From assembly GCF_000142905.1 (NCBI RefSeq), contig NW_013657648.1:202922-266921 (forward strand): a stretch of 64,000 bases of DNA, read 5' to 3'. Of the stretch, positions 1,318 through 54,797 are shown one piece after another (positions within the stretch are counted from its first letter, which is position 1; each line of letters opens with the position of its first letter). The notes under the pieces are model-generated. The model was given only the letters and a program-made list of their open reading frames with translations, did not search any database and was not told the DNA's origin. A program made the position numbers and the translations under genes. Origin of the DNA: Thecamonas trahens ATCC 50062. Its lineage: Eukaryota > Protista > Apusomonadida.

Positions 1318-2325
1318 TCATCCGGACCCGCGGTCGTTCATCAGCGGCGGCTCATCGCCGAGCTCGGCCTTCAGCTGCCGCCACAGCTCGTAGTCGATGT
1401 TGAGGATGGCCTGCCGCCGCGAAGCGCGCTCGCTCGCCTTGCCTCTATTGCCCGCTTGCATGCTCTTGACCATCGGAACCGACGTCTCGTCATCGACCCA
1501 GATGTGCAAGCTGCCCATCTTGGTCAGGAATGAGGTGTAGAACATGTTCTCTACAGTCTGTGCATACGAGGTCGGGTTGATGACGAGCTGGTAGAGTGAG
1601 ACCGGGCGGTCGAAATCGAGCAGCAGCTGAAGCATTTCCTGCATCGTTTCGTTGTCCTCACGGGTCTCCATCTGCACATCGGTATCCGGCCTCACCTGTT
1701 GCAACAGCTGCGGCTCGGCGGCGTCCATACGCTGCCGCGCCTCCGTTACCGTCCCGCGCGGCCTCCGCGCTACCCGCCGCCGGATCTGCGAGCCGGTACA
1801 GACCGGGCCGTACATCAGATCAAGCTTGGGCACCGTCCGCAGAAACTTGCCAAACGTCTCGCCCAGCCGCGCCATGTCCACCACCGTCCCAAACATCTTG
1901 CGGACCTCGGTGGCAAACGCCGCCGGATCCATGCGAGTAAAGTCTGTCCGTAGGTTCTCCACCTTGGCCCTGCCGACTCCAGCCAGCTCGCTCATGGCCT
2001 CGGCGTCGATGGCGCCCGTCCGTGGCTCCTTGATGCTGATGACCTCACTGAGCGCCCTTCCTCGCGCAAGCAACGTCACTAGCTTGGTGTTTCCGGGCGT
2101 CGACGCCTCGACCTTTGACTCGATGATGTCCTTGAGGTTCTTCTGTGTTTTCGACCGGATCCTGGCCTGTACCTTTGCCGTCTCCACCAGCCCATGCGGC
2201 CTTACCGCCGCCGGCCTGTCCTCGTCACCGTCGTCCTCACGCCCACGCTTCCGCTTGGTCTTGTTCTTCTGCTTGTGCTTCCGCCGCTCGCGCGGCTTCT
2301 CCTCTTCAGGCGCCATGCCCGACAT
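1318..2325 (-). CDS. NSE4: NSE4/EID kleisin subunit of the SMC5/6 complex
   Basis: C-terminal motif LVINPTSYAQTVENMFYTSFLTKMG...QAILNIDYELW typical of Nse4_C; EAM..DAE-type N-terminal region; start taken at MSGMAPEEEK. Confidence 0.85.
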   Translation of the reverse strand: MSGMAPEEEKPRERRKHKQKNKTKRKRGREDDGDEDRPAAVRPHGLVETAKVQARIRSKTQKNLKDIIESKVEASTPGNTKLVTLLARGRALSEVISIKEPRTGAIDAEAMSELAGVGRAKVENLRTDFTRMDPAAFATEVRKMFGTVVDMARLGETFGKFLRTVPKLDLMYGPVCTGSQIRRRVARRPRGTVTEARQRMDAAEPQLLQQVRPDTDVQMETREDNETMQEMLQLLLDFDRPVSLYQLVINPTSYAQTVENMFYTSFLTKMGSLHIWVDDETSVPMVKSMQAGNRGKASERASRRQAILNIDYELWRQLKAELGDEPPLMNDRGSG

Positions 2326-52827: not shown

Positions 52828-53806
52828 ATGGCCGACGTCAAACAGAGGCTGCCACGCAGGGCCACCGCGCCAAGCAACCGGCCACGGAGGGCAACGAGGT
52901 CTGCCAGGGTGACAGCAGCATACTCGCTGACTTTGAGTGAGAACAGGCGCTTGCATTCGGGATACCTGACAAAACAGGGCGGGTACGTGCTAGGGAGAGG
53001 GTGGTGGAAGGGCGGGGGGGGGCGGGGGGGGGGGGGGGGAGGGGGGAGGAGGAGGGTGGAGGGGCGACTCACGCGTGTCGGTGTCGCATGTGTGGTGGGG
53101 GCCGGAGCACAGCAAGTGGAAGACATGGAAGCTGCGATGGATGGTGCTTACGCCTGTGGCGCTGACGTATTATGTGAATGAGGAAGAGAAGAACGAGAAG
53201 GGGTCGATCCGGGTGGCCGACATCACGTACGTGGCCACCAATCTCGGTGAGAGGACAAACTGCATCGAGCTGGGCACCATCGGAAGGGCCTTCTTCCTCT
53301 CGGCAGAGTCGGCGGCAGACTATGAGGTCTGGCTCGGGTGGCTCAACTTGGTCTGCACTGTTCCGCCGGCGCCGGAGACTCATGTGGCGTGCTTCAAGCT
53401 CTTTCGCGAAGGCCTTGAGCAGGGCCACGCCGCCACCACCGATCGGTACAAGGATCCCGAGATGGACGTGCTCCACCCGTTTGACGCCCTCGTCGACATC
53501 GGCGTCCCTTCCCTCGCTGACATCCTCTTCCCGCCGATCTCGACCAAGGTTGAGGCGTCGGCGACGACGCTCGAGCTCCGCGATGCGCGGTTCTCGGTCA
53601 ACGGCTCGGTCTCCATGCGCCAGTGCCCAACCACTGGCGCCTGGCGCGTTGTCGCCGAGGACTGGACCCCGTCGATCCATGCGTTTATTGAGAGCAACGG
53701 CCTCAACGTTGACGCCTCGGGGCCGTCGACGCCCAATCGCTCGCCGTCGTCGTCATTCTCGCACGCCTCTCGCCCAGGCGACAACGACGACGACGATTCG
53801 TCGTGA
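52828..53806 (+). CDS. PH-domain protein; exons 52828-52982 and 53113-53806
   Basis: Splicing gives HSGYLTKQGGKWKTWKLRWMVL...LTYY...KGSI...FFLSAES...EVWL, a canonical PH domain; GTACGT...CAG intron. Confidence 0.88.
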
Positions 53807-53893: not shown

Positions 53894-53924
53894 GTTGGTC
53901 GATTGTGTTATTCTGCCCTCGCTG
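53894..53924 (-). promoter_or_regulatory. Conserved downstream element of the H2A 3' end (HDE-like)
   Basis: Minus strand CAGCGAGGGCAGAATAACACAATCGACCAAC; near-identical to 54768-54797 after H2B. Confidence 0.65.
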
Positions 53925-53930
53925 GAGAAC

Positions 53931-53963
53931 GGGGGTGCGCTCTAAGAAGAGCGCAGGTTGTTG
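53931..53963 (-). promoter_or_regulatory. Histone 3' UTR stem-loop (H2A)
   Basis: Minus strand CAACAACC-TGCGCTCT-TCTT-AGAGCGCA-CCCCC, about 60 nt after the stop. Confidence 0.85.
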
Positions 53964-54016
53964 TAGGACGTGTTAGGTCCAGAGCACGCGTGCGCGAGCC
54001 GAAAGGCGAAGCTTGC

Positions 54017-54152
54017 TTACTTCTTCTTCGACTTGTTGGGGAGGAGGACGGCGTGGATGTTGGGGAGGACACCACCCTGGGCGATCGAGACGTCCTTGAG
54101 CAGCATGTTGAGCTCCTCATCGTTGCGGATGGCGAGCTGGATGTGGCGCGGG
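54017..54152 (-). CDS. H2A: Histone H2A (3' part; remainder in gap)
   Basis: [44 protein letters not shown]. Confidence 0.96.
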
Positions 54153-54588
54153 NNNNNNNNNNNNNNNNNNNNNNNNNNNNNNNNNNNNNNNNNNNNNNNN
54201 NNNNNNNNNNNNNNNNNNNNNNNNNNNNNNNNNNNNNNNNNNNNNNNNNNNNNNNNNNNNNNNNNNNNNNNNNNNNNNNNNNNNNNNNNNNNNNNNNNNN
54301 NNNNNNNNNNNNNNNNNNNNNNNNNNNNNNNNNNNNNNNNNNNNNNNNNNNNNNNNNNNNNNNNNNNNNNNNNNNNNNNNNNNNNNNNNNNNNNNNNNNN
54401 NNNNNNNNNNNNNNNNNNNNNNNNNNNNNNNNNNNNNNNNNNNNNNNNNNNNNNNNNNNNNNNNNNNNNNNNNNNNNNNNNNNNNNNNNNNNNNNNNNNN
54501 NNNNNNNNNNNNNNNNNNNNNNNNNNNNNNNNNNNNNNNNNNNNNNNNNNNNNNNNNNNNNNNNNNNNNNNNNNNNNNNNNNNNNNNN
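54153..54588. other. Assembly gap between divergent H2A and H2B
   Basis: N run. Confidence 1.
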
Positions 54589-54675
54589 CGTCTCATCCTC
54601 CCCGGTGAGCTCGCCAAGCACGCCGTGTCCGAGGGCACCAAGGCCGTCACCAAGTACACCACCTCGACTGCCTAA
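54589..54675 (+). CDS. H2B: Histone H2B (3' part; remainder in gap)
   Basis: RLILPGELAKHAVSEGTKAVTKYTTSTA*. Confidence 0.96.
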   Translation, partial: RLILPGELAKHAVSEGTKAVTKYTTSTA

Positions 54676-54726
54676 GCGCCTCTCCTCGCCCGTCCGTGAG
54701 CATCTGCTCACAGGCAGGCAGCCAAC

Positions 54727-54759
54727 CAACAACCTGCGCTCTTATTAGAGCGCACCCCC
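54727..54759 (+). promoter_or_regulatory. Histone 3' UTR stem-loop (H2B)
   Basis: CAACAACC-TGCGCTCT-TATT-AGAGCGCA-CCCCC, about 60 nt after the stop; 32/33 identical to the H2A copy. Confidence 0.85.
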
Positions 54760-54767
54760 CTCCCTTG

Positions 54768-54797
54768 CAGTGAGGGCAGAATAACACATCGATCAAC
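54768..54797 (+). promoter_or_regulatory. Conserved downstream element of the H2B 3' end (HDE-like)
   Basis: CAGTGAGGGCAGAATAACACATCGATCAAC, matching the block downstream of H2A. Confidence 0.65.

Follow-up and report, generated by a model that had tools for sequence, protein, structure and literature searches.

Can a flagellate outside the animals form the 3' ends of its histone mRNAs with the two-part, U7-type signal known from animals? The question is raised by a divergent H2A/H2B gene pair in a 64,000-nucleotide (nt) stretch of the genome of Thecamonas trahens ATCC 50062 (the window; contig C32:202922-266921), in which each gene is followed by a conserved hairpin (block 1) and, past a short spacer, by a second conserved element (block 2). 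We examined the pair within the 28.7-Mb, 131-contig assembly (64% G+C), to which all genome-wide statements below refer; the coordinates of the features are collected in Table 1. Block 1 is a genuine histone-type stem-loop, and this organism is likely to process its histone mRNAs with a system of the animal (U7-like) type.

On the mRNA strand the 3' flanks of H2A and H2B both run through CAACAACC, TGCGCTCT, T(C/A)TT, AGAGCGCA and CCCCC, with 32/33 positions identical, and both hairpins have a stem of 8 base pairs (bp) and a loop of 4 nt. After a spacer of 15 nt from the stem in H2A and 17 nt in H2B, both flanks carry the second block GAGGGCAGAATAACAC (16/16 identical), which is continued by (A)ATCGA(C/T)CAAC. 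The distance from stop codon to stem is 62 nt in H2A and 59 nt in H2B, and neither the untranslated region (UTR) ahead of the hairpin nor the spacer between the blocks can be aligned between the two genes. A bipartite signal of this kind had been described in an earlier note on the window, and every detail of that description that we checked proved to be correct. The stem-loop pattern found zero matches in any shuffle of the window, and the two matches of the downstream block pattern were likewise reached in no shuffle. In RNAfold the H2A stem-loop belongs to the minimum-free-energy fold, at -20.8 kcal/mol with a z-score of -3.6, and the fold for H2B has -20.8 kcal/mol and a z-score of -2.65. 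The antisense strands of both hairpins (window 53933-53980 (+) and 54713-54757 (-)) gave hits of 20.7 and 23.2 bits to the bacterial nhaA-I riboswitch, which has a gathering score of 37; we rejected these as the chance resemblance of a GC hairpin.

Across the genome there are seven exact copies of the hairpin and seven of the 16-mer block, always together and only in H2A/H2B flanks, namely those of three H2A/H2B pairs (on contigs C9, C14 and C32) and of one lone H2A (C14). The remaining matches to the block have two mismatches each and equal the control count in number; one follows a stop codon by chance and the other lies just upstream of an apparent gene start. As the exact block is confined to histone flanks and all other matches stay at control level, it is not a dispersed repeat unrelated to histones, a possibility which the earlier note had named. 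Alignment of the histone 3' flanks places the block at all multi-copy H2A and H2B copies and a diverged form of it at H3 and H4. The two H3 genes show ACAACC-TGGTTCT-TTTT-AGAACCA-CCCCC followed by GGGAAACAGAATGAAC, with the block (GGGAAACAGAATGAACGC) 10-11 nt beyond the C tract, and the four H4 genes show AACAACC-TGTGTTCT-TTTC-AGAACACA-CCAC followed by GGGCAGCAAATGAAG, with the block (GGGCAGCAAATGAAGAAAC) 12 nt beyond CCAC. In both classes the downstream block is a diverged relative of the H2A/H2B block with the form GGG..CAG..AAUGAA. Across classes the stem begins 53-62 nt past the stop codon and is flanked by ACAACC and CCCCC/CCAC. In every class 15-19 nt separate the stem from the block's GGG, and the A-rich core keeps a fixed distance, starting 23-25 nt past the stem in H2A, H2B, H3 and H4.

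The stems themselves differ between classes by paired changes of C-G to U-A at two positions, with one pair fewer in H3, these compensatory changes having been read by eye rather than with a covariation tool. Loop positions 1 and 3 are U in all four loops (UCUU, UAUU, UUUU and UUUC). Within the inner six pairs of the stem, the G-C at pair 2, which the animal SLBP requires, is kept, again by eye, in H2A/H2B, H3 and H4. The Rfam model RF00032 recovers the H3 stem-loops at 21.8 and 21.0 bits, under its gathering score of 34, and gives no match at E<=1 on those of H2A/H2B. Only the multi-copy core histone genes carry the signal; within 200 nt of the stop codon it is missing from both an H2A.X-like gene and a lone copy of H2B.

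Some further histone genes have features of their own. The lone H2B copy (C28:309510-309692) is followed about 170 nt past its stop by (CCCAAA)n repeats. An intron-containing H3 variant (C40; L021:894-975 (-)) has a weaker stem-loop, GGTTCTT-TCTC-AAGAACC, about 210 nt past the stop, followed by CCCCC, 9 nt and AATGAACAATCGA; this last part resembles AATAACACAATCGA of the H2A block, and the whole may be either a remnant or a site of alternative processing. Upstream of a canonical H3, on the same strand and at a distance of about 340 bp, lies a CenH3-like H3 variant (C57:191925-192257) whose N-terminal extension is long and basic.

A related form of the signal was recovered from a second species. 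Among ocean-metagenome contigs encoding an H4 protein identical to that of T. trahens, two have the exact T. trahens flank, five derive from a relative, and one has no hairpin in its short flank. The relative's flank reads TGTGTCC-TTTT-GGACACA, CACC, 12 nt (11 nt in one of the five) and then AAGCAAGATTAAACCAAAGAAC; its block, also written AAGCAAGAUUAAAC, is related but not identical to the T. trahens block. The stem has undergone a compensated change of U-A to C-G, and the distance from stem to A-rich core is 23 nt, the core being AUUAAA. The corresponding search with H2A, made with its exon 2, reached only relatives of 74-81% identity, most of which show the ordinary animal layout with an AAAGAG-type element about 11-14 nt past a 6-bp stem. 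These data bear on the alternative that block 2 is functionless and has merely travelled with a common 3' module as histone genes were duplicated and converted. In its favor, same-class copies are nearly identical well past the block in three of the four H4 copies and in the H2B copies. However, the 3' UTRs of H2A and H2B are not homologous and yet share two discrete blocks across unrelated sequence, and H3, H4 and the second species keep a related element at an equal distance despite their diverged sequence. We therefore regard this alternative as very improbable.

Profile searches detected one SLBP RNA-binding domain (PF15247) in the genome, with 91.2 bits on the genome and 86.8 bits on the open reading frame (ORF) L050:958-2034, and the stem-loop is almost certainly the binding site of this cognate SLBP. 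The search for proteins with the LSM fold yielded 13 loci, twelve of which were assigned by eye to SmD2, SmD3, SmE, SmF, SmG and Lsm1, 2, 3, 5, 6, 7 and 8. The thirteenth (C42, ORF L075:982-1680) has a long N-terminal extension, and its best PDB matches are the human LSm11 chains in U7 small nuclear ribonucleoprotein (snRNP) structures, with an E-value of 8e-9 as against 6e-5 for Lsm3 and 3e-3 for SmD2 in the same search. The alignment to LSm11 covers the Sm fold and also extends along the N-terminal stretch. Furthermore, a metagenome protein identical to this ORF carries precomputed assignments to PF28412, named LSM11_N in the Atlas, and to PF01423, and is placed beside LSM11 clusters. By these sequence criteria the ORF clearly encodes the orthologue of Lsm11, including the region at its N terminus that binds FLASH. 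Hence both SLBP and Lsm11, which the earlier note had listed among the proteins to look for, are encoded. We know of no role of Lsm11 outside the U7 snRNP, and the presence of SLBP together with this U7-specific protein makes a U7-type particle plausible.

Based on these observations we propose that each block forms one half of a 3' processing signal for histone pre-mRNAs of the replication-dependent type. The hairpin of block 1 would be bound by the genome-encoded SLBP; block 2 (GGGCAG-AAU(G)AAC, with its core 23-25 nt past the stem) would serve as the histone downstream element (HDE), positioning a U7-type, Lsm11-containing snRNP or a stand-in factor; and shared cleavage factors would then cut between the hairpin and the block, probably in or just past the CCCCC tract. 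The chances that block 2 is indeed an HDE-type element of an Lsm11/U7-type system seem to us about even, and the more specific idea that a true U7-type guide RNA pairs with GGGCAG-AAU(G)AAC in this non-animal flagellate is tentative. Of this proposal, the anatomy, its confinement to multi-copy core histone genes, the fixed spacing and the two proteins are observed; that a guide RNA would bind block 2, the position of cleavage and the lack of a poly(A) tail are inferred. RNA sequencing runs carrying the histone mRNA exist (about 0.2-0.29 of words), mostly marine metatranscriptomes together with two single-organism runs.

Several observations weigh against this proposal. The A-rich core sits about 8 nt farther from the stem than in typical animal HDEs, and it is always one substitution away from AAUAAA (AAUAAC and AAUGAA in T. 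trahens, AUUAAA in the relative). Lsm10 is absent from the 13 LSM loci found, a list that is incomplete in that SmB, SmD1 and Lsm4 were also missed. A genome search with the Rfam model of U7, a small nuclear RNA (snRNA), returned nothing at E<=10. This last negative is weak because the same search, which found U1 at 52 bits, likewise missed U2, U4 and U5 (U2 also escaping a pattern search), and because U7 is known to escape homology search (PMC5054213). Finally, pattern searches combining an antisense stretch with an Sm-like site gave only chance-level matches in coding or promoter regions. A duplex scan of about 270 kb (about 1% of the genome) also gave nothing convincing. The earlier note's suggestion of a U7-like guide RNA or an analogous factor thus stands in part: the stem-loop is genuine, the separate block is histone-specific and SLBP and Lsm11 are present, but no complementary small RNA was found in these searches.

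Several individual matches were considered as guide RNA candidates and set aside. The match at C31:103249 (ATTCTGCC-AATTTGTCCAG) lies inside an ORF of 607 amino acids, and that at C63:31609(-) (GUUCUGCCC-AAUUUUUUCG) has no 3' hairpin. The match at C70:17225 can form 14 Watson-Crick and one G-U of 16 pairs with the H2A/H2B block, but its fold is not significant and the counts equal those of the control. A match on C10 (L082) falls at the 5' end of a gene; in the same region (L082 ~1470-1500 (-), C10:342849) there is a perfect 9-bp hairpin, AATGAATGG-TGA-CCATTCATT, which sits shortly upstream of what is probably a short exon 1 (ATGGCGGCGGCGACCGAAG/GTAAGT). The region C43:172526-172590(-) shows a U7-like order of GUUCUGUUCUUGUUC, AAUUUGUCAAG and a 6-bp GUGGCC...GGCCAC hairpin, and can form 13 pairs (five of them G-U) with the H2A block; however, its pairing with H3 and H4 is poor, it lies antisense to the final codons of a gene on the plus strand, and chance alone is expected to yield hits of this kind. 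It is probably a chance match and a weak lead at most.

The resemblance of the core to AAUAAA raises the possibility that block 2 is a histone-specific poly(A) signal, consisting of an AAUAAA variant with its context, such that the mRNAs would keep the stem-loop internally and be cut and polyadenylated shortly downstream. Polyadenylation might then be the sole route, or it might back up stem-loop processing in the way suggested for Physarum and early-diverging fungi. The strongest point in its favor is that single step from AAUAAA, taken by AAUAAC in H2A/H2B, by AAUGAA in H3, H4 and the intron-containing H3 variant, and by AUUAAA in the relative; moreover, Physarum histone genes combine stem-loop, HDE and poly(A) signals such as AAUGAA (PMC8600027), and stem-loop and poly(A) features are reported to coexist in a 2026 preprint (bioRxiv 10.64898/2026.10.14.759114). 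Against it, AAUAAA and its single-substitution variants numbered 15 against 16.5 expected in 37 non-histone stop flanks of high GC3 and 400 nt each. Among 16 genes whose stops are secure, A[AU]U[AG]AN was counted 5 times where 6.6 were expected, and 12 of these genes lack it altogether. Although these samples are small, the hexamer family is not enriched past ordinary genes and is therefore not the general signal of this organism, so that its reading by the poly(A) machinery at histone genes would be unusual; TGTAA, tried as a general poly(A) signal, showed no enrichment. Nor would an independent poly(A) signal be expected to keep a fixed distance of 23-25 nt from the stem, or to have GGGCAG conserved on its 5' side. 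Among the H2A paralogues similarity ends a few bases past AATCGA, within about 10 nt beyond the block, and hence they have no shared context for a cleavage site; moreover, the genome encodes Lsm11, a protein with no known role outside the U7 snRNP. The earlier note had allowed that AATAAC might be a poly(A) signal variant; the absence of enrichment weakens this idea, the closeness of the core to AAUAAA still speaks for it, and on balance we consider it unlikely.

RNA folding brings in a further alternative, in which block 2 works without any guide RNA, either as a protein site or as the 3' arm of a second hairpin formed by its GGG with the CCCCC flank. Such a hairpin could gate access to the cleavage site, or could pause or terminate RNA polymerase II. 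RNAfold indeed predicts a second hairpin right after the stem-loop in H2A (CCC/GGG with an inner stem), H2B (CCCUC/GAGGG) and H3 (CCCGU/AUGGG), even though the spacers differ, and a similar masking structure, opened by SLBP, is described for the human H4-12 pre-mRNA (PMC1635294). On the other hand, neither H4 nor the related species has a convincing second hairpin in RNAfold, those that are predicted are short, z-scores are near zero in H3 and H4, and pairing of CCCCC with GGG leaves the conserved CAG-AAU(G)AAC unexplained. A guide-free function of block 2 appears to be decidedly improbable. The second hairpin may add a structural layer.

The window itself is interrupted by an assembly gap between the two genes. 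Alignment shows that the sequences at the gap edges match two intact paralogous pairs, on C9 and C14, without gaps, the identity to the C9 pair being 258/259 and 222/224. Between the matching edges both intact pairs have 787 bp as against 436 N in the window, and the gap length is therefore underestimated: its true length is probably about 787 bp, the N run being too short by about 351 bp, and the gene pair is probably intact. Neither the stem-loop nor the downstream block of either gene touches the gap. The C9 copy of H2A (L024:1381-1845; the same gene as window 54018-54152 plus gap) has a short exon 1, MAGKGGKGKGGRGG, followed by a GT...AG intron placed after about codon 14, and the H2B open frame is likewise without a start of its own. 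Replication-dependent histone genes of animals are intronless. Beyond H2A, the ORF 53075-53806 faces the 3' end of H2A with its own 3' end, and a long G-rich run (GGGGGGGGCGGGGGGGGGGGGGGGAGGGGGGAGG) occupies window 53000-53045 just upstream of this ORF. For a dynamin encoded in the window, the nearest named hit is amoebozoan, at 42% identity.

Table 1. Features of the H2A/H2B locus, in window positions unless a locus is named
Feature	Position	Strand	Basis
H2A coding sequence, 3' part, from stop codon (54018-54020) to assembly gap	54018..54152	-	C-terminal translation identical to the intact C9 and C14 copies
H2B coding sequence, 3' part, stop codon 54673-54675	54589..54675	+	open frame
Assembly gap (N run) over the promoter common to H2A and H2B and the 5' part of each gene	54153..54588	.	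comparison with paralogous pairs
H2A stem-loop 5' flank CAACAACC, A/C-rich	53956..53963	-	ACAACC common to H2B, H3 and H4
H2A stem-loop TGCGCTCT/AGAGCGCA, 8 bp, loop UCUU	53936..53955	-	exact match; in minimum-free-energy fold
H2A 3' flank CCCCC; expected cleavage zone if processing is animal-like (inferred)	53931..53935	-	
H2A downstream (HDE-like) block GAGGGCAGAATAACACAATCGACCAAC; GAGGGCAGAATAACAC part at 53905-53920	53894..53920	-	exact match
H2B stem-loop 5' flank CAACAACC	54727..54734	+	
H2B stem-loop, stem as in H2A, loop UAUU	54735..54754	+	exact match
H2B 3' flank CCCCC	54755..54759	+	
H2B downstream (HDE-like) block GAGGGCAGAATAACACATCGATCAAC; GAGGGCAGAATAACAC part at 54772-54787	54772..54797	+	exact match
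Predicted second small hairpin, CCCCC flank with GGG of block	53921-53935 (-), 54755-54776 (+); H3 L018 ~1961-1976		RNAfold

To our knowledge U7 snRNA has not been demonstrated experimentally outside animals. The protein side of the system (Lsm10, Lsm11 and FLASH) is now widely reported. T. trahens offers an unusually clean target, with an element that is defined in sequence, present in four histone classes at one fixed distance and found in a second species, together with an Lsm11 that has its FLASH-binding region; the question whether histone 3' processing guided by an RNA has a pre-animal origin thereby becomes directly testable. Should a U7-type guide RNA act here, RNA-guided cleavage of histone mRNAs would predate animals, and the closeness of its target to AAUAAA, together with the fixed spacing from the hairpin, would hint at a poly(A) signal as the source of the HDE. 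More generally, the near-AAUAAA core may bear on the relation between stem-loop processing and polyadenylation.

In comparison with the animal signal (RF00032, RF00066), the T. trahens elements share the 4-nt loop with U at positions 1 and 3, the second G-C pair, the A/C-rich flanks, a hairpin at a comparable distance past the stop codon and, at a short and constant spacing, a second element rich in A and G; they are likewise found on all four core histone classes and not on the variants examined, in a genome that encodes SLBP and Lsm11. They differ in having a stem of 7-8 bp rather than 6, in scoring below gathering (H3) or not at all (H2A/H2B) with RF00032, in a core of AAU(G)AAC after GGGCAG instead of AAAGAG that also lies farther out, in the intron of the H2A gene and in that our searches of T. 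trahens found no U7 RNA. The premise of the earlier note that the U7 machinery is specific to animals is outdated, as LSm10 and LSm11 are reported from Physarum (PMC8600027) and, according to the consulted sections of the survey across eukaryotes (bioRxiv 10.64898/2026.10.14.759114), widely in protists and algae. Those sections report SLBP, stem-loops and homologues of LSM10, LSM11 and FLASH as widespread outside animals and, for Rozella, the prediction of a U7-like RNA; they make no mention of apusomonads, and they score HDEs only as AAA/AAGA motifs, unlike the sequence-defined element described here. In Chlamydomonas and Volvox non-polyadenylated histone mRNAs with 3' hairpins are on record (Fabry et al. 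1995, as cited in PMC5054213); by description these 3' palindromes resemble those of T. trahens as histone 3' hairpins outside animals, but they belong to a different lineage.

The closest parallel is Physarum polycephalum, which has a stem-loop, a purine-rich HDE, poly(A) signal hexamers including AAUGAA, SLBP, LSm10 and LSm11, and in which no U7 was found (PMC8600027). T. trahens resembles it as a non-animal with stem-loop, downstream element, hexamers like poly(A) signals, SLBP and LSm11, and in the outcome of the U7 searches. It departs from Physarum in that LSm10 was not detected among the LSM loci of T. trahens, and in that the HDE of Physarum was called merely as a purine-rich stretch (PMC8600027), whereas the T. 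trahens element is conserved in sequence across histone classes, keeps a fixed distance and is seen in a second species. With similar inventories already published for Physarum (2021) and in the 2026 preprint, T. trahens is not a new kind of system but an unusually well-defined further case.

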